This document shows positions 14,025 through 63,934 of a DNA stretch of 64,000 nucleotides, piece by piece. The translations under genes and the position numbers were made by a program. The DNA is from Selaginella moellendorffii. Taxonomy: Eukaryota; Plantae; Lycopodiophyta. The stretch's first letter is position 1. The number at the start of each line of letters is the position of its first letter. The stretch spans positions 1,356,461 through 1,420,460 of the forward strand of contig NW_003314297.1 in assembly GCF_000143415.4 (NCBI RefSeq), written 5' to 3'. Under the pieces are notes generated by a model. The model made no database searches and was not told the DNA's origin. It worked only from the letters and a program-made list of their open reading frames with translations.

Positions 14025-16673
14025 TTACGTAAAGATTTCTCCTTTATCATCCCAATCTCGTGCTGTTGCATAGATGTTTGATAGCAACACCTTTCCAGCC
14101 AAACTGTCAGGATCCAGCTCCGCGACACGTTGGGCCGTACGCAGTGCCCGATCAGCGTCACCGTGGATCCTGCACGCCCCGAGCAGTGTCATCCAGTCCA
14201 CTGAGCAAGGCTCGGGCAAGTTGGCGACGAGAATTTCAGCTTCGTCCAGGTTGCCTGCCCGGCCAAGCAGATCGATGACGCAGTTGTAGTGGTCCACCGT
14301 AAGTTCCATGGAGTAGTCCGCGGTGATGGAGCCAAAGCACTTGCAGCCATCCTCAAACAACCCGGCGTGGCTGCAAACGAAGAGCATGCTGACGAACGTG
14401 ACATCGTTTGGCTGGATGCCATCCAGCTTCATCTGCATAAACACCTCGAGCGAGATCTCGTCGCGGCCGTGGTGTGAGTAAGTCGTGATCATGCTGTTCC
14501 AGGTAACCAGGTCTCTGCAGCGCATGCAGTCAAAGAGGCTTTCTGCGTCTTTCAGGCTCCCACATTTGCCATATAAGTTGATGAGCGAATTTTTGAGTCC
14601 CGTATCAGAGTCCAAGCCCCTAGAGACGATGCTCGCATGAACGGCCCTTCCCTGTTCCAGAGCCGTCAGGCTTGAACAAGCCTCAAGAACGCTCAAGAAC
14701 GTGACCCTGTCAGACTTCATCCCTTCTGGCTCCAGTCTGAAATACAATTCTAGCGCTTCCCGGTGACAGGCATGAAGAACATATGCGGAGATCATGGCCG
14801 TGCAGGAAACAACGTCTCGTGGGTGTATCCTGTCAAAGATATCCCTGGCAGTGGAAAGCTGTCCACATTTGCCATACATGTTGACCAGAGCGGTGGCCAC
14901 AAAACCCACGGACTCGAGTCCAGCAGCAACAATCTCAGCATGAATCTCCAAGCCCGCGGATAGCTGCCCCGTACTCGCACAGGCATCCAGCAGGGTGATA
15001 AATGTGATATCATTCGCCTTCACACCCTCTTCCTTCATCCCCTGGTAAAGTTGAAGCGCCTGTAAGCCATGCCCATGCTGGGTATGTGCACCTATGAGAG
15101 CACTCCAGGCGACTACATCCTTGCTCGCTAGCTTGTCAAACACAGCCTTTGCATCATCCAGGCTCCCGCACTGGCCGTACATCTTGACTAACGAGATTCC
15201 CACCGTCTGGACATCAATGCCGCAAGCAGCACTCCGGGCATGGACCGCTTTCCCCTCGCAAAGAAACCTGGCCGATGAAAATGCACCAAAGATGCTGTTG
15301 AAAGTGACTCCATCGGGCTTCACACCTTCGCAAGCCATCCACCTGAAAACCTGTAGAGCCTCGTGACTGTCCCCCTGTTCTGCATATCCGGCTATCAGAG
15401 CGTTCCAGGACAGTAAGTCGTTCCGGTCCATCTTGTTAAAGACGCTTCTTGCCCCAGTCAGACTTCCACACTTCCTGTACATGTTGACGAGCCCACTTGC
15501 TATCGAGTTGTCTATGTCGAATCCACCGGCGTGAAGCCTCTCATGCACCCGCATGCCTTGTCTGAGATCACCCAGGCAAGAGCAAGCGTCGATAAGGCTG
15601 ACAAACACGATCTTGTCCGGCTTGATCCCCTCCTGTTCCATCCTCCAGTACAGTTCCAGAGCATCCAGACTTTCACCGTGCTGGACACATGCCGCGATCA
15701 TGGCTGTCCACGAGACAACATCCTCTTTCTCCATTCTGCCGAAAACGCTCCGGGCATCGCCAAGGCTGCCACACTTCGCGTACATGTTCACAAGAGCAGT
15801 GTCGACAATGTGTGAGAGACTTGAGCTAGTAATACGAGAATGGATTCTCTTACCTTGAGCTAAGTCACCCACGCATGCACAAGCGTCGAGAGCACTCACG
15901 AGCGTAACTTCGGTTGGCTCAAACTCCATCCTCCAAAACAGCTCCAGCGCCTCACTTCCATACCCCTGCTGGGCGTAAGCACTGATCATCGCGTTCCACG
16001 AGACGTCGTTTCTCTTCTCCATCCCGTCAAAGACGCGCCGGGCATCCTCCAGGCCACTGCATTTACCATACATGGTGATTAGCGAGGTGCTCAAAACAAC
16101 AGTAAGTTGACGTACTTCGGCAAGAACTCGCGAGTGAATCGTTCTCCCTTCACTCAGCTCTCCAATGCCCGAGCAAGCGCCCACCGCTCCAACAAACGTC
16201 ACAACATTTGGCTTCACTCCTTCCAGATCCATCCTCTTGAAAATCTGGAGAGCTTTCACCGGCTGGGAATTGAAGACGTAAGCCGTGATCATGATATTCC
16301 ACGAGAAAACGTTCTTGCAAGAGATTTTCTCGAAGACCTGGACCGCTTCCTGGACGCTCTGGCACCTGCTGTACATGTTTACCAGATGATTCGCGAGAAA
16401 AATATCGCCGCCCAGCCATCGCTGAGCGATCAGGCGATGGATCCGCCTCCCGATCGACAGCAGCCTACAGGATTGCAGCAGCGAGGCGTAGAGAGATTTG
16501 TCCGCCCCGGGTTCTTGCTCCAATCGAGCTACCTGAGATTCTAAACTCCTCTTGCGATCGTCTCCATCAAAATATCCACATCCAGAGCTAGGAATCGACG
16601 CATACGACGCGAAATGGCGCTTACCGGTTACCACATTGCCCTCCTTCCCTCGCCAGCGGCAGCGTCTCATCAC
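14025..16673 (-). CDS. PLS-class PPR protein with E domain, no DYW (organellar RNA-editing factor type)
   Basis: Intronless 882 aa ORF with repeated LVNMYxKCG / VSWNAMI / PDxVTF motifs, ending WMTLLGACRIHGD...VLLSNIYA. Confidence 0.95.
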   Translation of the reverse strand: MMRRCRWRGKEGNVVTGKRHFASYASIPSSGCGYFDGDDRKRSLESQVARLEQEPGADKSLYASLLQSCRLLSIGRRIHRLIAQRWLGGDIFLANHLVNMYSRCQSVQEAVQVFEKISCKNVFSWNIMITAYVFNSQPVKALQIFKRMDLEGVKPNVVTFVGAVGACSGIGELSEGRTIHSRVLAEVRQLTVVLSTSLITMYGKCSGLEDARRVFDGMEKRNDVSWNAMISAYAQQGYGSEALELFWRMEFEPTEVTLVSALDACACVGDLAQGKRIHSRITSSSLSHIVDTALVNMYAKCGSLGDARSVFGRMEKEDVVSWTAMIAACVQHGESLDALELYWRMEQEGIKPDKIVFVSLIDACSCLGDLRQGMRVHERLHAGGFDIDNSIASGLVNMYRKCGSLTGARSVFNKMDRNDLLSWNALIAGYAEQGDSHEALQVFRWMACEGVKPDGVTFNSIFGAFSSARFLCEGKAVHARSAACGIDVQTVGISLVKMYGQCGSLDDAKAVFDKLASKDVVAWSALIGAHTQHGHGLQALQLYQGMKEEGVKANDITFITLLDACASTGQLSAGLEIHAEIVAAGLESVGFVATALVNMYGKCGQLSTARDIFDRIHPRDVVSCTAMISAYVLHACHREALELYFRLEPEGMKSDRVTFLSVLEACSSLTALEQGRAVHASIVSRGLDSDTGLKNSLINLYGKCGSLKDAESLFDCMRCRDLVTWNSMITTYSHHGRDEISLEVFMQMKLDGIQPNDVTFVSMLFVCSHAGLFEDGCKCFGSITADYSMELTVDHYNCVIDLLGRAGNLDEAEILVANLPEPCSVDWMTLLGACRIHGDADRALRTAQRVAELDPDSLAGKVLLSNIYATARDWDDKGEIFT

Positions 16674-18040: not shown

Positions 18041-18185
18041 AAGAGTTAATAAGTTTATTATTTCAAAGCTTTCAATTCTAAACATTGGTTAGTAGCTAAA
18101 CCAATAGAGTTTATCTTTAAAACAATAGCATATGCTCGCGTATATTCACTTCCCCCCCTTTTGAGAATTAGGGCTTTCAGGTGAA

Positions 18186-18797
18186 ATGGTGATAGTCTAC
18201 GCCGGGCCAGAGATGGAGGAGGCGGAACGGAAGTTACACAGGCATGCCCTTATTTTTTTCTTCTGGAGGAACTCCGGCATCACCATAACCTGCGATCTTG
18301 TCAAGGAGTGGATCAATGCGACAATCGGCATCAAAACAGAGGCAATTCTTTTGTGTCGCGACCAGGGTAATGGCTTCTTTCTTGTCTACTTCGATCGGAA
18401 GCGTTCCCGCGACCTAGTCCTCGCAACGACGGCCCGGCCGATCGGGATTGCCGTGAAAGCTTGCAGCTTCCCGTGGTGCGCCGCCGCAGTCAACGATAAG
18501 GGCGAGGAGTGCTGGCCACGGATGTTGGAGCTTTCGGGGCTTCCGGATGTGTGGCTCATGCTTCTAGACGTGATCGGAAACGCGCTGGGGACCTACGTTG
18601 GAGTGCTGGATCCGGACACGCCCCGGATAGCCGTCATGCTGCCCGTCTCCCGGAGGCTACCATTTCACGTCAAGCTGGAAGTGAGAAAGGGCGTGTTTGT
18701 GAGGCAGCCCGTTGTCGAGTTCCGGGAGGATTGCTTCGATCAGGGGCTTCGACGAGGACGACGGGTATCTCACAGAGCACGAAGATCATCATCATAA
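18186..18797 (+). CDS. DUF4283-like (LINE ORF1-type) domain, probably the N-terminal part of the downstream F-box/Kelch gene
   Basis: GNGFFLVYF, LELSGLP...LDVIGNALGTYVG, PRIAV, LPFHVKL...VRQPVVEF follow the DUF4283/plant L1 ORF1 pattern; overlaps the next ORF in the +1 frame. Confidence 0.7.
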   Translation: MVIVYAGPEMEEAERKLHRHALIFFFWRNSGITITCDLVKEWINATIGIKTEAILLCRDQGNGFFLVYFDRKRSRDLVLATTARPIGIAVKACSFPWCAAAVNDKGEECWPRMLELSGLPDVWLMLLDVIGNALGTYVGVLDPDTPRIAVMLPVSRRLPFHVKLEVRKGVFVRQPVVEFREDCFDQGLRRGRRVSHRARRSSS

Positions 18798-19980
18798 TCA
18801 GCCGAGGCATCCGAATCCTCAAGACGGTCGTGATCATCAATCCGGCGGTGCCCCGACTTCTTCTTCAGAGCTCATCCCCGGCCTCGGACACCAGGAAGCC
18901 ATGCTGTGCCTCGCCAGACTCCCGCGATCCGAGCGCTTGGTCTTCTACACGGTGAGCAAAGCGTTCTATCAACTGGTGCGCAGTGGGAAGCTCGAGAGCT
19001 GGAGGCGCAGTGTCGGCGTCGTTATGGAGCGGCATTGTTTTGTTTGCCTCACCACTCCAGGAGGAGGTTGCTGCTGGAAGGGCGTCTGCCTGGATACAGG
19101 GAAATGGTGGCCGCTTCCGCCTCGAGCTCAAGACGGTGACGAGCTTTTCGGGAGCGTTATGACTGGAACGCAGCTCCTGGTGCTGGGACGCCACAGCCTG
19201 TGGACTTACTGCTTGAGATCTGACAAATGGCTCGCTCCTGCCACCCCTCCTGCGTACGAGTGTGCCTTTGGCAGTAGCGAGCACACAGCATTTGTTGCGG
19301 GCGGGATCGACGAGCAAGGCTTTGCTTCCACAGCCGCTGCAGTGTATACAAGCACCACGTCGTCGTGGAAGTTCCTCCCAGACACGAATAAGGCAAGACG
19401 ATCTTGCTCCGGAGTGTGTATGGACGGGAAGATCTACGTGCTTGGAGGGGTCTCCCAAACAGGCCTGCCAATGTACTGCGGGGAGGAATTCGACCCGGCG
19501 CTCAAAAGCTGGACAGTGATCGACAATATGGTGCCTTGGTCTGAGCATCACATGCGCCCTCTCGTCACGGTGCTGGACAACGAGCTGTTTGGTCTGAACA
19601 CTAGAACTAAGAGCCTCGTGATTTATTGCAAGCGAAGCAATACATGGAAAGCTATTTCCAGAGCTCGGAGTTACGCTGAGCTTCAATACAGAGCGAGGGG
19701 TGAGTCCAACAGCTGGGACGTGGCTGGAAATACACTTTTTACTTCTATAAATGGGAGTTTGATCATCATAAATGGAAGGTACACTTTTTACTTTTATAAC
19801 AGGGAGCTTCATCATTGTCCTGGGAGCCACCGGAGGATGTCCTCCAGCCTCTGCTGGAAGGAGGCAGTGACCAGGAGGACGAGGAGGAGGAAACGCTCCC
19901 TGGGCAACGATGGAGATTCCAGGCGGGTTGTGCAAGCTGTGTGCTGTGATGGCTGGATAGTGTTCTGCAAGCTGTGCTGA
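18712..19980 (+). CDS. F-box/Kelch-repeat protein (SKIP11-like)
   Basis: F-box LIPGLGHQEAMLCLARLP; Kelch motifs AFVAGG, WKFLPDTNKARRSCSGVCMDGKIYVLGG, CGEEFDP...W; no in-frame ATG upstream of the F-box. Confidence 0.88.
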   Translation: MSSSGRIASIRGFDEDDGYLTEHEDHHHNQPRHPNPQDGRDHQSGGAPTSSSELIPGLGHQEAMLCLARLPRSERLVFYTVSKAFYQLVRSGKLESWRRSVGVVMERHCFVCLTTPGGGCCWKGVCLDTGKWWPLPPRAQDGDELFGSVMTGTQLLVLGRHSLWTYCLRSDKWLAPATPPAYECAFGSSEHTAFVAGGIDEQGFASTAAAVYTSTTSSWKFLPDTNKARRSCSGVCMDGKIYVLGGVSQTGLPMYCGEEFDPALKSWTVIDNMVPWSEHHMRPLVTVLDNELFGLNTRTKSLVIYCKRSNTWKAISRARSYAELQYRARGESNSWDVAGNTLFTSINGSLIIINGRYTFYFYNRELHHCPGSHRRMSSSLCWKEAVTRRTRRRKRSLGNDGDSRRVVQAVCCDGWIVFCKLC

Positions 19981-56500: not shown

Positions 56501-56717
56501 TGAGCACGGTTTTCCATCGGGCTCCTCCCAAAGTCACATATTCTGATTTTAGAAGGCCTCAAAAAATCTTGAATCGCTTGCGTGAGGGGTCAGATGGATT
56601 CCGAACATCCTGTCAATCATCTCGCCACTCTCGTCCACGGGTCTGACCGCCCTCGCCTCAGGAGCGAATGATCAGGTGAGACGCCTAGAGATAGATCTTA
56701 GGCCACGAGCAAGAATC

Positions 56718-59700
56718 ATGGTGGATCCAGGCTTTGTCTCGGCGCTCATTGCAGAGATAGTGCACCTGGCGATAGTAGAAGCGGCTAAGGTTGTGATGTG
56801 CCGGGAATACTGTATGCAATTAGCAAAAATGGTGGATTCTTGTGTCAAGCCGGTCGTGTCTGAACTGGGGAGCCTTGGGAACAATCCGCAGCTCAAGAAT
56901 GTTGCTGACACCTGGCTTGCAAGCCTTCGGGCCTGCCTAGAAGATGCGCAGGCAGTGATCATCGAGTGCAGGAGCGTGCATTCCTTCAACGTTTTCGTCA
57001 AGTAAGATGCATTCTTCTTTCTTCTGAGTAACGCATCAATTGATCAGTGCATCGTTCTGCAGGTACAGGCTCTCGCGCAGAATCATGAGTATTCTGGTCA
57101 AGATAAAGGAACTTCACGAGGCTGCCAGTACTTGGAACGTGGCCCTGTCTGCCAAGGTTGTCACACAATGCAGTGAGGTACTACGGTTGCTTCAAGACAA
57201 TTACAGATACGTTTCACTTTCGGCAAAGACCTGTGGATGCACACAGTCTGAGAGTTATAGCAAAGATCGTGCGATTTTTGAGATAACGAATGAAGCAACG
57301 AGTCACTCGGCTGGTTTAGACGTGGTCGACGAGCCAACTACAGAACTTCAGCCGATTCCGAAGCTGGTGTTTGGACTGGAGGAATTGAGCAGCCGACTTG
57401 AAGCAGTCCTTCGAGATGGCACAGGACGATGGGTTGGTGTTTGGGGCAAGGGAGGTTCAGGAAAGACGCTGTTGACACAAACTGTCACTAACAGTTTATC
57501 GGTGAACAATCACTTTGGAGGAAAGGTATATTGGCTCACGGTTGCACGAAATCCCAACATTGCCAGGTTGCAAAGTAGATTACGCAAACACATCGGCCGT
57601 GGGGAGCAGCTCTTTTCATCCGAGGAAGCTGGCAGGAAAACCCTCATCAACTGCTTGAAGAACAGCAAAGTGTTGTTGATCTTGGACGATGTGTGGGATG
57701 GAAATGTGCTGCAGTGGTTTGATGTGGTGGATGCTCCAGGCAGCAAAATTCTGTTGACTTCCCGGAACAACAGTGTCTTTGACAAGGTGCCATCAACGGT
57801 CATCGAAGTGAAACTGCTTTCGGATGAGCATAGTTGGAATCTCTTCTGTGGCTGTGCATTTCCGGGACAAGACCGGCAACAGCTAGAACACGACATGGAA
57901 CCAATACTTGCCGAAAGAGTAAAGCAAGTGGTCTCTGAGTGCAAAGGACTGCCTTTAGCTCTCAAAGTCATTGGTGGAAGCATGGCAGGCAAGCAGCAGC
58001 TAGGCGACTGGGATTCTACATTACGCAAGTTGAAGAATGCCGAGGTTTTGAACGAGGAACAAGAGAACCAGGTGTATCACAGACTCAAGCTTAGCTATGA
58101 CGAACTCGATATGATTGACAAAGCCCGAGGCAGAGCACTGCAAGAGTGCTTTCTCTACTTCGCAGCCTTTCCTGAGGATGCAGTTATAGAGGTGGAGCAG
58201 CTCATTGGGTATTGGATTGGTGATGGCTTGATAGGATACAAAGACGATGAAGATCCTCAGGTTGAGGCTTATTACATTCTGGGCCAGCTTATAGGACGCT
58301 CACTCGTGGATCTGGAAGTAGGTTGGACATATAGCCAGAACACGAAGTTCTTGAGTTGCAAAATACACGATGTGCTTCGGGATATGGCGATTTACATATT
58401 GGAAAACCAGAAGAAGGCCACTGAGTATGCGTGCCTGTTTCTGTCTGGAAGGGAGTTTCCTGCAGGACTATGCAAAGGTACTGGCCAAGAGAAGTTCAAC
58501 GCTAAGAAGCTTTCTTTGATAGGAAATCAGGTGGAGAACGTCGATAAGCTTGGAACTCGGGCTCCGGATGTGGAAGTGCTACTCCTTAGCAACAACATTC
58601 AGCTGAAACATCTTACCGGACGGTTTCTGTGGAGCTTTAAAAAGCTCCGTGTACTGGACCTGAGCAGGACGGGCTTAATATCTCTTCCCATGGAGATTGG
58701 GAAGCTCAAAGAGTTGGTCGTCCTCGACATTAGTTATAGCAGCATCCGATCTGTGCCGGACTCTTTGGGCAGGCTGGTGAAGTTGGAACATCTGAACATG
58801 CAAAACTGTCCATTGAAGAGCTTTCCAGTGCACAAAGTATCGAATCTCGTCAACTTGCGTTATCTCAACACAAGAGGGTGTGGAGATATTTGGGACCAAA
58901 ACCGGCACAGTCCTTGCAGCTGTGTAACATCTGAACTTCCAATACAAGGCCTAAAGAATCTAGCAGCCTTGCAAATGTTGACCAGGTTATGGATCAGCAG
59001 CCGAACTACAGAACGCTTCCCTGCTATCTCTTCAACCAGGCTGGTACATCTCAGCCTTTACTTCGAACAACTTTCAGTCATTCCAGACGAGCTCCAGTCT
59101 CTGGCCGCTCTAGAGGTTCTCGATGTCAACACTTGCAGATTACTCCAGAAGCTACCGGACTATCTCGCCAAGTCCTTCTTGGGACTGCTTGCTCTCGACC
59201 TTCGTGGCTGCACGTCGTTGTCGCAACTTCCTTCAGATCTGCAGGAACTACAATGGCTTCAAAAGCTGGATCTTGAAGGCTGCTTGTCCTTGCAATCTCT
59301 ACCAGAGGCTTTCGGAAGTTCAGGTGCATTTCCTTCGTTACAAGAGCTTTTCATGACGGGATGCAGAAGACTAGAAGCATTTCCAGAATTGCAACCAGGG
59401 GCGCTTCCTCGTCTTCGTATGCTCAAACTGCCGTTTTGTGCGCGCCTGCAACACTTGGATATACATCCCAAGGCGCTGCCCAACCTTGTCCACTTGAACC
59501 TGGGTGGCTGTGCCGGATTGAAAGAGCTCCCTGACGAGGAAGCGTTGAGATATTTTTCATACTTGGAGGAGCTGGTTTTGAACAACACGCAAATATCTAG
59601 CTTACCTGCGAGTATAGGACTGCTTCCAAGGCTGAAGAAGCTGGATTTGAAGCAATGCATGCAACTGAGAGCGTTACCATGGGTTGATTTAAGCGGTGAC

Positions 59701-60747
59701 TACTTCATCAGCTTGGAAGAGATATCTATGCAAGGAATTCCCATTCGAGAACTGCCCAAGGTTTTGGCTGCAGCACCACAGCTCCGAAAAATGGACCTCA
59801 CGGACTGCGACTTCATAACCCTGACGGACGAGGTGTTCGGCTTGTTGAAAACCAGAAACGTTAATCTCATCAGAGCCAACGTTCAGATCATATCTGCTCT
59901 GAATGAAGCGGAAATGGGGCATGAGCACGAAGCAGACAAAGAACCGATAAAGCAGAAGCCAGAAACTGGGAAAGCAGCTGAGAACACTTCAGAGACGAAT
60001 ACCGACCAACATGAATCTGCTACTGTCTTGGATCCGAGTAGTTCAAAAACGAGATCTACAACCAACCAGCACAGTACCTCCTTTCCTTCATTCAACAATT
60101 TCCTAGACTGGTTAGCAGGATTCATAGACGAAACCAGTATAGATGAAGATGTAGAATATCAGAAGCTGGCAAAGGATGCAAACGGCTACGATCCTGGTCA
60201 TGTGCGGAGGGTCGATTTGCGAGACATGAAACTGCAACTCTTCAAGCGAGGATTGGAAGATCATCTGGTGCTGGGCTCATGCAGCGGAGACGTCATCACT
60301 GAGGAGGTCCTCAAAAACCTGGCCTGTACGAGCTGGAACGTGCACTCGTATGTTGGTGCTCGTTTCCTGGCAAACGGTTTCTTCGAGCTGGCATTCGCAA
60401 ACTCGCTGGATGTTCAGAAGTTGCTGGAGAAGCGGTTTGCGCAGTATGAAGATCGCGTGATCCTCTTCCAGCCTTTCCAGCAAGACTTCAACCCCAACGA
60501 GGTTGGGAATATCAAAGCAGCTGTTTGGGTGGGATTGCCCCTCCTGCCGACGGATTGCTTGCATCCCAAAGTTTTGAAGGCGGTTGGGAATGCACTTGGT
60601 AGCTACTTGGCATATGAGCTTGACGGTGGAAGGCTTCCCAGGGTTTGCTTCGCATGCACCATCCAACAAGAACGGGAGTTGCCTAGTGAACTGGAGCTGG
60701 TTCTCCCATCCGGCAAAGTCTGGCTGCAGCGCTTGGTATGGTCGTAG
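56718..60747 (+). CDS. RPW8-like CC-NB-ARC-LRR immune receptor with C-terminal DUF4283-like integrated domain
   Basis: Exon 1 RPW8-like helix bundle (...FNVFVK|YRLSRRI; intron 57002-57062); P-loop GKGGSGKT, LLILDDVW, KILLTSR, GLPLAL, CFLYFAAFPED, IHD; LRRs; C-terminal ANGFFELAF...VWVGLPLLP...VGNALG. Confidence 0.93.
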
Positions 60748-60915
60748 ACAAAAGGTGGGATTTTGAGCGTGAAGCATGCAAGGAGCTTGTGATGAGAGTT
60801 CACAGAGTGGCTTGTGATAAATGCGATCTAAACGAAAAGTGATGAGAGTTCACAAAGTGGCTGTGACGAAAGTAAATGTGGTCTTAGTTTGACGCGTGTA
60901 AGGCTGTGGCGTTGT

Positions 60916-60955
60916 AACGTGTCGTTCTCTCCAATGACCACGTGGTGACACGTGT
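60916..60955 (+). promoter_or_regulatory. Cluster of ABRE/G-box elements upstream of the LEA-like gene
   Basis: AACGTGTC, CCACGTGG and GACACGTGT within 40 bp. Confidence 0.65.
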
Positions 60956-61010
60956 ATTGGTCCACCTATTGGTGTTTAAAGGTTTTAGGGTTCTTCGGCA
61001 GGGCAGAGCA

Positions 61011-61731
61011 ATGGCGAGAGCGCAAGAAGGTGAATCGGGGCTTGACGCAGTCGTTCGCGATGCGGCAAATCAGAATGAGGAAAATGCTGGTGGCCAGGAG
61101 TCGGAGTTTGATACGATCGCTCGCTACAGAGGGCAGGCTCAGGAAAATATGGGGAATTTCTTAGCGCAGCATGTCGCTCGTCACGGCGAGCCGGGCAAGA
61201 ACAAGGGAATCGCGGTATGAAAAGGTTTTCTTTCCCTCTTCTCAAGTGGCGAAATCTCGCAGGGCAAGAGTGAGGAGCAACTCCAAGCTAAGGATGGATC
61301 GTCGATCTCTGACCAGCTTGGCAAGAGGTGAGTTTCTCTACAAGGCCTCCCGATTTCTCCTGTCCCATTCTTAGATCCTGGAGGATTTGAATCGCAGCTC
61401 GGACGAAGCTCGTGAAAGAGTCTTCCAGAGCGGGGATAGAACATACGACGCGATCGAGGAGGCGAAGAAGTCCGTCCAGAAGAGGTTTGAGGACGCGAGG
61501 AAAAATGCGAGCGACAAGAAGAAGGACGCACCGGATGAAGGAGCAGACAGCTACACCGCGATCAACGAAGCCAAGGAGGAGCTCAAGGACAAATACGATG
61601 CTGCTAGAGATCATTTCGATGAGAATGCCAGTGATGTGGATAAATCTCGAGAAGGACAAGATGGATCGAAGGAAGCCAGTGGCATTTCGTCGGTGACCCG
61701 ATCGATCAAAGAGGCCATCGCTGGAAAGTAA
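61011..61731 (+). CDS. LEA-like hydrophilic protein
   Basis: Highly charged A/D/E/K-rich helical repeats (YDAIEEAKK, AINEAKEELKDKYDAAR); two short introns; ABREs upstream. Confidence 0.65.
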
Positions 61732-61966: not shown

Positions 61967-63534
61967 TCAGCTGCAAATTATATTTTGATCGAGCCTGATG
62001 GACGCGTTCACGAGCAAGTCAGCATTGAGCGTCATCGTTATACTTCTCGTGCGCTCTTCCATGTCGATCCCGCCCGGGTTAGCAGCACGCCAATTAAATG
62101 CCTGGAGCAAACTGGCCACGTAAAACGCGATCGATCTCATCGCCAGTGGATAGCCGGCACATACTCTCCTGCCCGATGAGAATGGAATGAAATCAAAGTT
62201 CTGCCCGTTGATGGCGCTGCTGGAGCCGAGAAAACGCTCCGGCTGGAACGCTCCTGGGTCGGGCCAGCGAGCGGGATCGCGTCCGATGGCCCATATGTTG
62301 ACGAGAACCTTGCAGCCGCCGGGGATGGTGTACCCGCCCAGGTTGACGGGCTTGAGATTCTTGTGAGGAACTCCCAGTGGGGCTGCCGGGTGGAGACGCA
62401 GTGATTCCTTGACAATGGCATCGATGTATGGAAGGTTTGGAAGATCGGACTCTTGCACCGCGCGAGCTCTCCCTACAACGCTGTCCAGTTCGGCTTGAGC
62501 CTTGGACACGACTCGGGGATGGTTTATGAGCTCCGCCATTGTCCACTCGAGCGTCACTAGTGAAGTTTCCAACCCTGCAACAACCATGTCCTGTCGCAAG
62601 AAGTGAAAAATACCAATATCTCGATGCTGGCAAAACTTACCCAGAGCAGTGCCAAAATGGAAATGTCTGGCAATTTATCCTTGTCCTCGAGAGATATAAG
62701 AACGTCAGTGAAGTCTCGAGGGACGAACCCGTCCCCAGCTTGATCTTTTCTGCGTCGATGCTTGTCGATTTGATCTTCCAGCAAGAGCTTCAGGCGAGGC
62801 ATGAGCTCCCTGTTGATTTTCTTGTAGACTCCATGGAGATCCAGCCCGTCAAGTGCCGGAAGCAGGGTACCGATGTTCAGGTGCAAGCTTAGAGAAGCTA
62901 TCTTCTGGCTGAGATCCATGACCTCCAGCCCCCGCTCGCTAAGAAGAACCAGGCATAGCGAATTCGACAAGAGACTACTGAAAACCTCGTGCAAATTGAT
63001 CGTTGTCTCGGATTGCTGGAAAATGGACTTGACTGTATGCTTCATCTCCGACTCACGGAATCCTGCGCTTGTCTTGAGCATACTGTTGCTAAACAGGTGT
63101 GTGCTGCAAATCCTCCTCATGGTCTTCCACTTATCACCTATGGGCCCGAGGATGAGACCGTTCCAGTCGTGGCTGATGATCCGAAAGAACTCGTCGTCCG
63201 GCCGGCTTGCAAACTCGAGATCGTGGGTCTTAAGAACCTGTGCGGCCATTTCGTTGTTGTTTACCACCACGAACGGGGCCATTCCGATCTTGAGGTAGAC
63301 GATCGGCCCATACTTCTTGCTGATCTTTGCAAAGTGCTGGTGGAGTGGCTCCTTGAGGGAGAAGAGCGCTCCAAAAATGGGGAAAGAGAATGGACCTGGA
63401 GGGAGGCGCCGTTGCTGCGACGATCGAATTCTCCCTATGAGGAGTGATAGTATGATCCAGCTGATGCCCAGGACGAACAAAGCCACACCTAAGTCCATCG
63501 CTTCAAAGGTCTGGATCTCCACGGCCATAGCCAT
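61967..63534 (-). CDS. Cytochrome P450, CYP71 clan (A-type), two exons
   Basis: TM anchor + LPPGP; AGLETS; KESLRLHP; PERF; FIPFSSGRRVCAG; intron 62591-62640; start may instead be 63498. Confidence 0.93.
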
Positions 63535-63934
63535 CAGGCTCAACGAAGACCCCGGTGGGCGGGGTTCGCAAGGCACCTTGCCGTCTCCGCTGGATGGCCC
63601 CGTGGAATGCATGCTCCCATAAAAAACTCGCAGTTAGCAGCCCACGACATGATTTAAATTTTTAATGATACCAGTCAAAGACATTTTTACAGGAGGTCGA
63701 AGAGATTCTCCAAGCCTTGGCCAATCTCCCATATAGAAACTCCAACGCCCGCGGAAACACTCTCTTCTAGCCCGGAAGAAACGCTCTTGGCAGTGGGGAA
63801 GTAGACCCTGTGCTTGTTTTGATCCTTAAAGTAGTGCAATCCCGGGATCAGAAGCTCCAAGAATTGGTCGCCAACAATAGCTCCACCACCTAGAATGAAA
63901 AGTAGGGTTAACAAATTGATCCTAAACAGATGTC

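Follow-up and report, generated by a model that had tools for sequence, protein, structure and literature searches.

The locus described here raises the question of whether a domain related to the ORF1 proteins of LINE retrotransposons, read in frame with the C-terminus of a plant NLR, is a genuine part of that receptor and, if so, what it may contribute to it. It lies toward the end of the window, the 64,000-nucleotide stretch of Selaginella moellendorffii DNA that was analyzed, and the earlier note on this DNA had proposed an RPW8-type NLR whose DUF4283 domain was co-opted as a decoy or as a nucleic-acid or ORF1p sensor. With regard to anatomy, we are highly confident that this is one expressed gene encoding a complete NLR, an acidic disordered linker and a folded DUF4283 module that is cut at the zinc-knuckle boundary and has no ORF2 behind it. 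For this anatomy taken jointly with a role of the module as an integrated bait in a singleton sensor-type CC-NLR, the functional part of which we infer, the chances are about even.

The gene is read from the forward strand and consists, according to spliced RNA contigs, of two exons (coding parts 56718-57001 and 57063-60747) that together encode a 1322-aa protein. The long ORF at 57040-60747 (+) is open throughout, and the ORF upstream of it (56676-57005) gives a weak RPW8 match in Pfam. Contigs of run X1 (record 1) and run X2 (record 8) begin at about 56507-56561, leaving a 5' UTR at 56507-56717 before position 56718, the first ATG of the RPW8-like frame. The coding part of exon 1 opens with MVDPGF and holds the start of an N-terminal helical domain of the RPW8-like or MAEPL-type CC kind, with 24.3 bits to Pfam RPW8 for the exon alone. 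A phase 2 intron of 61 nt with GT..AG borders (57002-57062) follows, and the frame is restored across the 57001>57063 joint, which each of the four runs shows in its RNA contigs. The second exon then encodes the rest of the helical domain to about aa 150 (57063-57228), the NB-ARC domain (aa 212-442) with a winged helix (aa 464-537) at 57412-58389, the LRR region from aa 599 to about aa 1037 (58573-59889; Pfam LRR_14, LRR_4 and LRR_8), the linker of about 120 aa (59890-60246), the DUF4283 domain (60247-60744) and the stop codon TAG (60745-60747). A short 3' UTR (60748-60852) is delimited by contig ends at 60838-60852 (X1 record 6, X2 record 13). The spliced model agrees in length and sequence with database protein P0091 (1322 aa; RefSeq XP_024538933), which RefSeq names 'probable disease resistance protein At4g27220 isoform X2 [Selaginella moellendorffii]'. 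The five RefSeq isoforms, X1-X5, differ near the N-terminus only and have the C-terminus in common.

Transcript evidence consisted of contigs (Logan unitigs) from four public runs belonging to four studies. Because these contigs carry the GT..AG joint, all four runs are RNA, and the two ORFs are fused in frame. The end of the LRR, the linker and the domain are bridged by contigs from X1 (59889-60852, record 6), X2 (59889-60838, record 13) and X9 (59702-60440, record 25), and no splice joint was found between 57063 and 60852 in the contigs of any of the four runs. Contig depth is even along the gene and falls past about 60850, ahead of the start of the next gene at about 60993. Two short allelic bubbles in the LRR (59373-59483 and 59791-59918) are the only interruptions of the contigs, with a k-1 overlap across them; no unitig covers the whole mRNA, and single molecules are not provable from unitigs. 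As far as the contigs show, the domain belongs to the NLR mRNA. The claims that domain and LRR occupy one uninterrupted exon in the same frame, and that they share a transcript, are thus upheld by the open ORF, the in-frame Pfam match and the bridging contigs, and neither splicing nor polyadenylation before about 60200 was seen in the four runs.

The same contigs provided some information about variation. At the two bubbles, X1 and X2 show five differences in the first patch (one synonymous, four nonsynonymous) and four in the second (two of each), with the variants at about 30-40% of the depth, which suggests two expressed alleles differing mainly in LRR patches. Run X6, which is labelled as another organism, has a contig gap at 59953-60010 and then five differences within 36 nt of the linker, up to 60076. 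Of all parts of the gene, the linker varies most from one RNA sample to another.

The identification of the C-terminal domain as DUF4283 was confirmed. Pfam DUF4283 (PF14111) scored 49.7-53.3 bits against a gathering cut-off of 27.2, with a match at aa 1090-1193 of ORF 57040-60747 (E 3.6e-13) and, for the last 215 aa alone, an E value of 2.8e-14 at 53.3 bits. A profile of our own, built from 50 relatives with the query left out, scored the domain at 128 bits over 60247-60741, so the position originally given for it, 60202-60747, was correct to within about 45 nt. A sequence search of the PDB matched only the zinc knuckles of the relatives, the DUF4283 core being without a match.

An RRM-like core had also been ascribed to the domain, and structure prediction agreed. 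The AlphaFold2 model of the domain, made from our own alignment, has a mean pLDDT of 85.9 and exceeds 90 across most of the core. Model residues 40-117 (aa 1159-1236) form a canonical RRM, for which the best match was U2AF65 RRM1 (Z 10.9, rmsd 1.5 A over 74 residues) and many further RRMs matched at Z 9-10. The top Foldseek ranks were tandem RRM proteins (U2AF65, PABP, HuR and hnRNP A1; E from 2.6e-5), and since PABP RRM1-2 aligned over model residues 42-203, the second half of the domain (aa 1246-1322) is taken as a second RRM-like lobe. The predicted beta-3 strand of the RRM bears an RNP1-like NGFFELAF. Of the 33 core columns that at least 60% of relatives conserve, the NLR domain is identical at 20, including W1250 and P1257 (both invariant; the W1250 column at 100%), W1186 (a 93% column), G1274 and the GFF..F motif. 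Two of the four tryptophans typical of the family have given way to other residues (W>A at 1221, W>F at 1233), some R/D columns are altered, and the 50 bits scored in Pfam are about half of the 75-106 bits that LINE relatives reach. Both the domain (pI 5.4, net charge -4) and the low-complexity linker before it (pI 4.9, net charge -10; AF2 pLDDT 56-76 at the linker end) are acidic. GC3 is 0.64 in the domain, 0.54 in the NLR core and 0.45 in the linker, and the offset of the domain from the core may mean that it is not fully assimilated.

In plant L1 elements, DUF4283 is the domain that dominates among ORF1 proteins, usually together with zf-CCHC_4 (Ivancevic et al. 2016, PMC5203782). The nearest relatives of the Selaginella domain include P0002 and P0012, each of which is followed on its own contig by an ORF2 with Exo_endo_phos and RVT_1 domains; with an endonuclease and reverse-transcriptase ORF2 downstream, these two are true LINE ORF1 genes, and the LINE-ORF1-like origin claimed for the family is thereby supported. 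In the alignment, the relatives carry CxxC...GH...C straight after the domain, and the NLR protein finishes at W-S, about six residues ahead of their first Cys column. A tblastn search of 60748-61300 with all 88 relatives gave no significant remnant of a CCHC knuckle or ORF2, and the 250 nt past the stop consist of 3' UTR and intergenic sequence, followed by an unrelated spliced gene. The description of a clean end at the stop, with neither knuckle nor ORF2, therefore stands. 5'-truncated LINE insertions retain their 3' ends, so a piece holding ORF1 alone is atypical of such an insertion; recombination, or a LINE-derived host gene as the source, would be a more likely route of capture.

Several other features were observed in the window. 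In and just beyond the 3' UTR (60789-60866), near the site of polyadenylation, there are two copies of an imperfect direct repeat, 'gtgatgagagttcaca[g/a]agtggct', spaced by about 50 nt; TRF, run at score 30, listed no tandem repeats in the 3' region. In run X2, 2 nt are deleted at 60798, and loose letters repeat 60781-60793. The next gene (60993-61500, +) starts about 140 nt past the end of the NLR transcript, has two GT..AG introns of 48 and 70 nt, encodes a small hydrophilic product and reaches a depth of 846 in run X6, compared with about 11 for the NLR. It is followed on the opposite strand by a cytochrome-P450-like gene (61967-63612, -) in two ORF pieces, recognized by eye from the haem-binding-type FSSGRRVCAG. 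Farther upstream lie a PPR protein of 881 aa with an E motif (14025-16673, -; PPR_2 3.4e-100) and a diverged DUF4283-like ORF (18165-18794, +), which scored 24.7 bits with our own HMM (E 4.5e-7 over 684 six-frame pieces) and has no Pfam match. The latter has only an 'IGNALGTY...LP' stretch in common with the NLR domain, 35% identical over 48 aa, and just downstream of it begins an F-box/Kelch ORF (18712-19980; Kelch_1 2.1e-10, with a weak F-box match).

The receptor itself carries the canonical parts of an NLR-ID, NB-ARC and LRR, together with the non-canonical domain in the same frame and mRNA. Pfam identified the NB-ARC domain at 1.7e-43 to 1.8e-43, the winged helix WH_DRP (1.4e-09) and several LRR families, and the NB-ARC motifs are intact, namely the P-loop GKGGSGKT, LLILDDVW (Walker B), GLPLAL and IHD. 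No second NB-ARC or partner NLR was found by tblastn in the 64-kb window.

The receptor had been framed in the earlier note as an RPW8-type NLR, a type known in seed plants from the ADR1/NRG1 helpers, and this framing did not hold. A tree of 39 NB-ARC sequences gives the clade of nine seed-plant RNLs (ADR1/NRG1) a support of 100/100 and places outside it the Selaginella NB-ARC, which groups with P0097, P0098 and one Ceratopteris NLR at moderate support (92/57). This group adjoins Marchantia NLRs of the Mp3g091xx type (chromosome 3) inside a non-seed clade (83/63), which in turn joins angiosperm CNLs (92/77); an AU test did not reject the non-seed clade as sister to the RNLs (p 0.25). QHD was present in 7/7 seed-plant RNLs checked, and K[IV]HD in the Selaginella protein and its non-seed relatives. 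An ADR1/NRG1-type RNL helper was accordingly rejected as a candidate, given the position of the NB-ARC and the IHD in place of QHD.

The RPW8-like character of the N-terminus is borderline. An N-terminal profile aligned better with ADR1 N-termini (hhalign 98.2%, E 6e-14) than with CNL coiled coils (96.1%, E 3e-9), but scores to RPW8 (PF05659) lie on both sides of the Pfam cut-off of 30.4, aa 1-200 reaching 33.7 bits and the full-length protein 29.6, and the class is probably a non-flowering CC type. The AF2 model of this domain is helical and of low confidence (pLDDT 57 from a 9-sequence alignment), too poor for a fold search. The protein begins with MVDPGF and its relatives with MADPGF, MVEPM, MADPL or MAELV, so that by their sequences the receptor N-terminus and its relatives look like the non-flowering CC 'MAEPL' class, with MVDPGF as a putative variant of the motif. 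The MAEPL motif defines the CC class most frequent in non-flowering plants; it is required for cell death, which CC-MAEPL domains such as those of MpCNL1 and CrCNL1 trigger (Chia et al. 2024, PMC11218826). By analogy, the N-terminal region of the Selaginella receptor is probably a helical bundle that executes cell death.

If the domain is part of the receptor, it may still be without a role. A LINE ORF1 fragment could have landed or recombined in frame and been tolerated on the disordered linker as a passenger, which we regard as a real possibility, although a somewhat unlikely one. The distribution of the fusion is in keeping with such an origin. The last 215 aa, searched with phmmer in a library of 1.84 billion representative proteins, gave 88 weak matches, none of them in an NLR; the query's own protein was not returned either, so that the library's coverage of S. 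moellendorffii is uncertain. Among these protein representatives, the best identity to the domain was 34% (Cryptomeria proteins) and none exceeded 38%. In a word-index search of the 5.8-billion set, the C-terminal region matched no protein of 675-2147 aa other than the query, and the domain alone gave no match in the 123-390 aa range; for lengths of 390-675 aa, coverage came only from the phmmer search of the representative library. Neither an orthologue nor a paralogue with an NLR-DUF4283 fusion, and hence no conservation of the fusion beyond S. moellendorffii, was found in these protein database searches. Alignments with the closest NLR relatives, P0097 and P0098 (42% and 41% identical; both from transcript contigs), stop at aa 1026 and 1037, respectively (tblastn), and since both proteins end just past the LRR (P0097 about 17 aa on), the extension of about 285 aa is an addition in this lineage.

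A passenger would also agree with the variants read from RNA contigs, which are too few for a selection test: six synonymous and seven nonsynonymous in the NLR core, two and four in the linker, and none and two (V1242A and G1284E) in the domain. The lowered Pfam score, the two replaced tryptophans, the changed R/D columns and the GC3 offset point the same way. In addition, DUF4283 is fused in plant annotations to unrelated families, among them an ABC transporter (P0048), TBL, HSP70, 14-3-3 and others, and as it is joined to so many of them, the base rate of meaningless fusions must be high. Retrotransposon domains have been reported on NLRs 'ubiquitously', with no evidence of function (Sarris et al., PMC4759884).

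Against a passenger, the 285-codon extension stays open and every isoform ends in it, the predicted fold is confident, and the hydrophobic and fold-defining residues are retained. The cut falls cleanly at the boundary between domain and knuckle, where the stop also lies, and neither ORF2 nor poly(A) debris follows, which is unlike a 5'-truncated LINE insertion. Moreover, at no more than 34% identity to its relatives, the domain would be expected to have lost its reading frame over a long neutral history, an argument that fails if a Selaginella LINE of equal divergence was the source.

Under the integrated-bait reading, an ORF1-type coding fragment, from a LINE or a LINE-derived host gene, would have been captured into the final exon, at its 3' end, after the split from the closest known NLR relatives, and would serve as the integrated domain of a singleton sensor-type CC-NLR. 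At rest, the module might lie on or near the LRR. A pathogen effector normally aimed at RRM- or ORF1p-like host proteins could then bind or modify the module and so release autoinhibition, with a nucleic acid or retroelement RNP as a less likely trigger. The NB-ARC would subsequently exchange nucleotide and oligomerize, and the MAEPL/RPW8-like helical bundle would cause cell death at the membrane, as in the related Marchantia and Ceratopteris CC domains. The bait function, the release of autoinhibition and the N-terminal cell death are taken from the biology of NLR-IDs and from the experiments on CC-MAEPL domains. A protein bait is favored over RNA binding because the domain is mildly acidic and its linker acidic, because the knuckle is missing, and because two of the four tryptophans are gone.

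A second alternative gives the domain a role of another kind, that of a tandem RRM that still binds RNA, or co-assembles with LINE ORF1p, with RNPs or with viral RNA, and thereby activates the NLR. The RNP1-like motif on beta-3 of the RRM fold and the kinship with LINE ORF1p would suit such a sensor, but the CCHC knuckle is missing and both domain and linker are acidic. Direct activation by RNA is not known for any plant NLR, and we consider this sensor improbable. A similarly low probability is given to the broader proposal that the ORF1p module is a sensing head that watches retroelement or viral RNPs, or effectors hijacking them, and that this would be the first receptor with an integrated domain in the MAEPL-type class. 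Least credible by far is a gene-model artefact, with the domain on a separate transcript or lost by splicing or early polyadenylation, for although the unitigs break at the two bubbles and none spans the full mRNA, the k-1 overlaps, the three bridging contigs, the lack of any joint in 59400-60850 in the four runs and the depth profile all speak against it.

With the integrated bait retained as the preferred reading, some consequences can be considered. Because the NB-ARC-LRR genes of S. moellendorffii amount to no more than a handful, each of its NLRs is weighty for pathogen detection in an early vascular plant. This gene is compact, expressed and almost intron-free (a single 61-nt intron), and it indicates that integrated domains, here a retroelement-derived one, reach non-flowering MAEPL/RPW8-like CC-NLRs. 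If the domain is functional, a transposon protein would have been recruited into plant immunity; if not, the locus would be a clean example of how fusions originate. The protein is already in RefSeq with precomputed domains, and what is new is the lycophyte host, the MAEPL/RPW8-like CC-NLR that carries the domain, and the transcript support. No publication mentioning the XP_024538933 protein was found in our literature search.

Among known systems, the closest in architecture are the DUF4283 NLR-IDs of angiosperms. DUF4283 is a recurrent integrated domain of NLRs in Rosaceae and Fabaceae, as in Fragaria vesca, Malus domestica and Medicago truncatula (Sarris et al. 2016, PMC4759884), and NLR-DUF4283 proteins appear in surveys of maize and of legumes/Fabaceae (PMC10257044, PMC11734081); a functional characterization of them was not found in the literature surveyed. 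These proteins resemble the Selaginella receptor in joining NB-ARC-LRR and a retroelement-related DUF4283 in one polypeptide, with a putative role in both cases. The Selaginella protein differs in coming from a lycophyte, in carrying the domain on a MAEPL/RPW8-like CC-NLR, in its spliced transcripts and in the trimming of the domain to the RRM-like core.

The type I ORF1p of plant L1 (DUF4283/RRM with zf-CCHC_4, as in P0002 and P0012) belongs to the same Pfam family as the NLR domain, has an RRM-like predicted fold and shows the same motif order (GFF..F, QP.., DFNP, VWV.LP.LP, IGN.LG). In contrast, the NLR domain is at most 34% identical to it, lacks the knuckle, ORF2 and a start of its own, sits behind an LRR, has two of the four tryptophans replaced and is mildly acidic.

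Seed-plant RNLs of the ADR1/NRG1 type share with the Selaginella receptor a weak RPW8 match and an N-terminal profile nearer to ADR1 than to CNL coiled coils, whereas the Selaginella NB-ARC lies outside their clade with IHD instead of QHD, its LRR is far longer, and it bears a C-terminal integrated domain. Two earlier counts are in disagreement with the present gene: RPW8 was reported absent from S. moellendorffii (Zhong and Cheng 2016, PMC5039405), and the summary table of Chia et al. 2024 (PMC11218826) gives S. moellendorffii v1.0 without the (RPW8)(NBARC)(LRR) architecture. We attribute this disagreement to newer gene models. For CC-MAEPL NLRs, Chia et al. 2024 (PMC11218826) report no integrated domains. 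The Selaginella receptor resembles these NLRs in its M-[AV]-[ED]-P N-terminus, common to Sphagnum, Ceratodon, Calypogeia and Marchantia relatives, and in an NB-ARC that groups with those of Marchantia and Ceratopteris, and it differs from them in the putative motif variant MVDPGF and in carrying an integrated domain.
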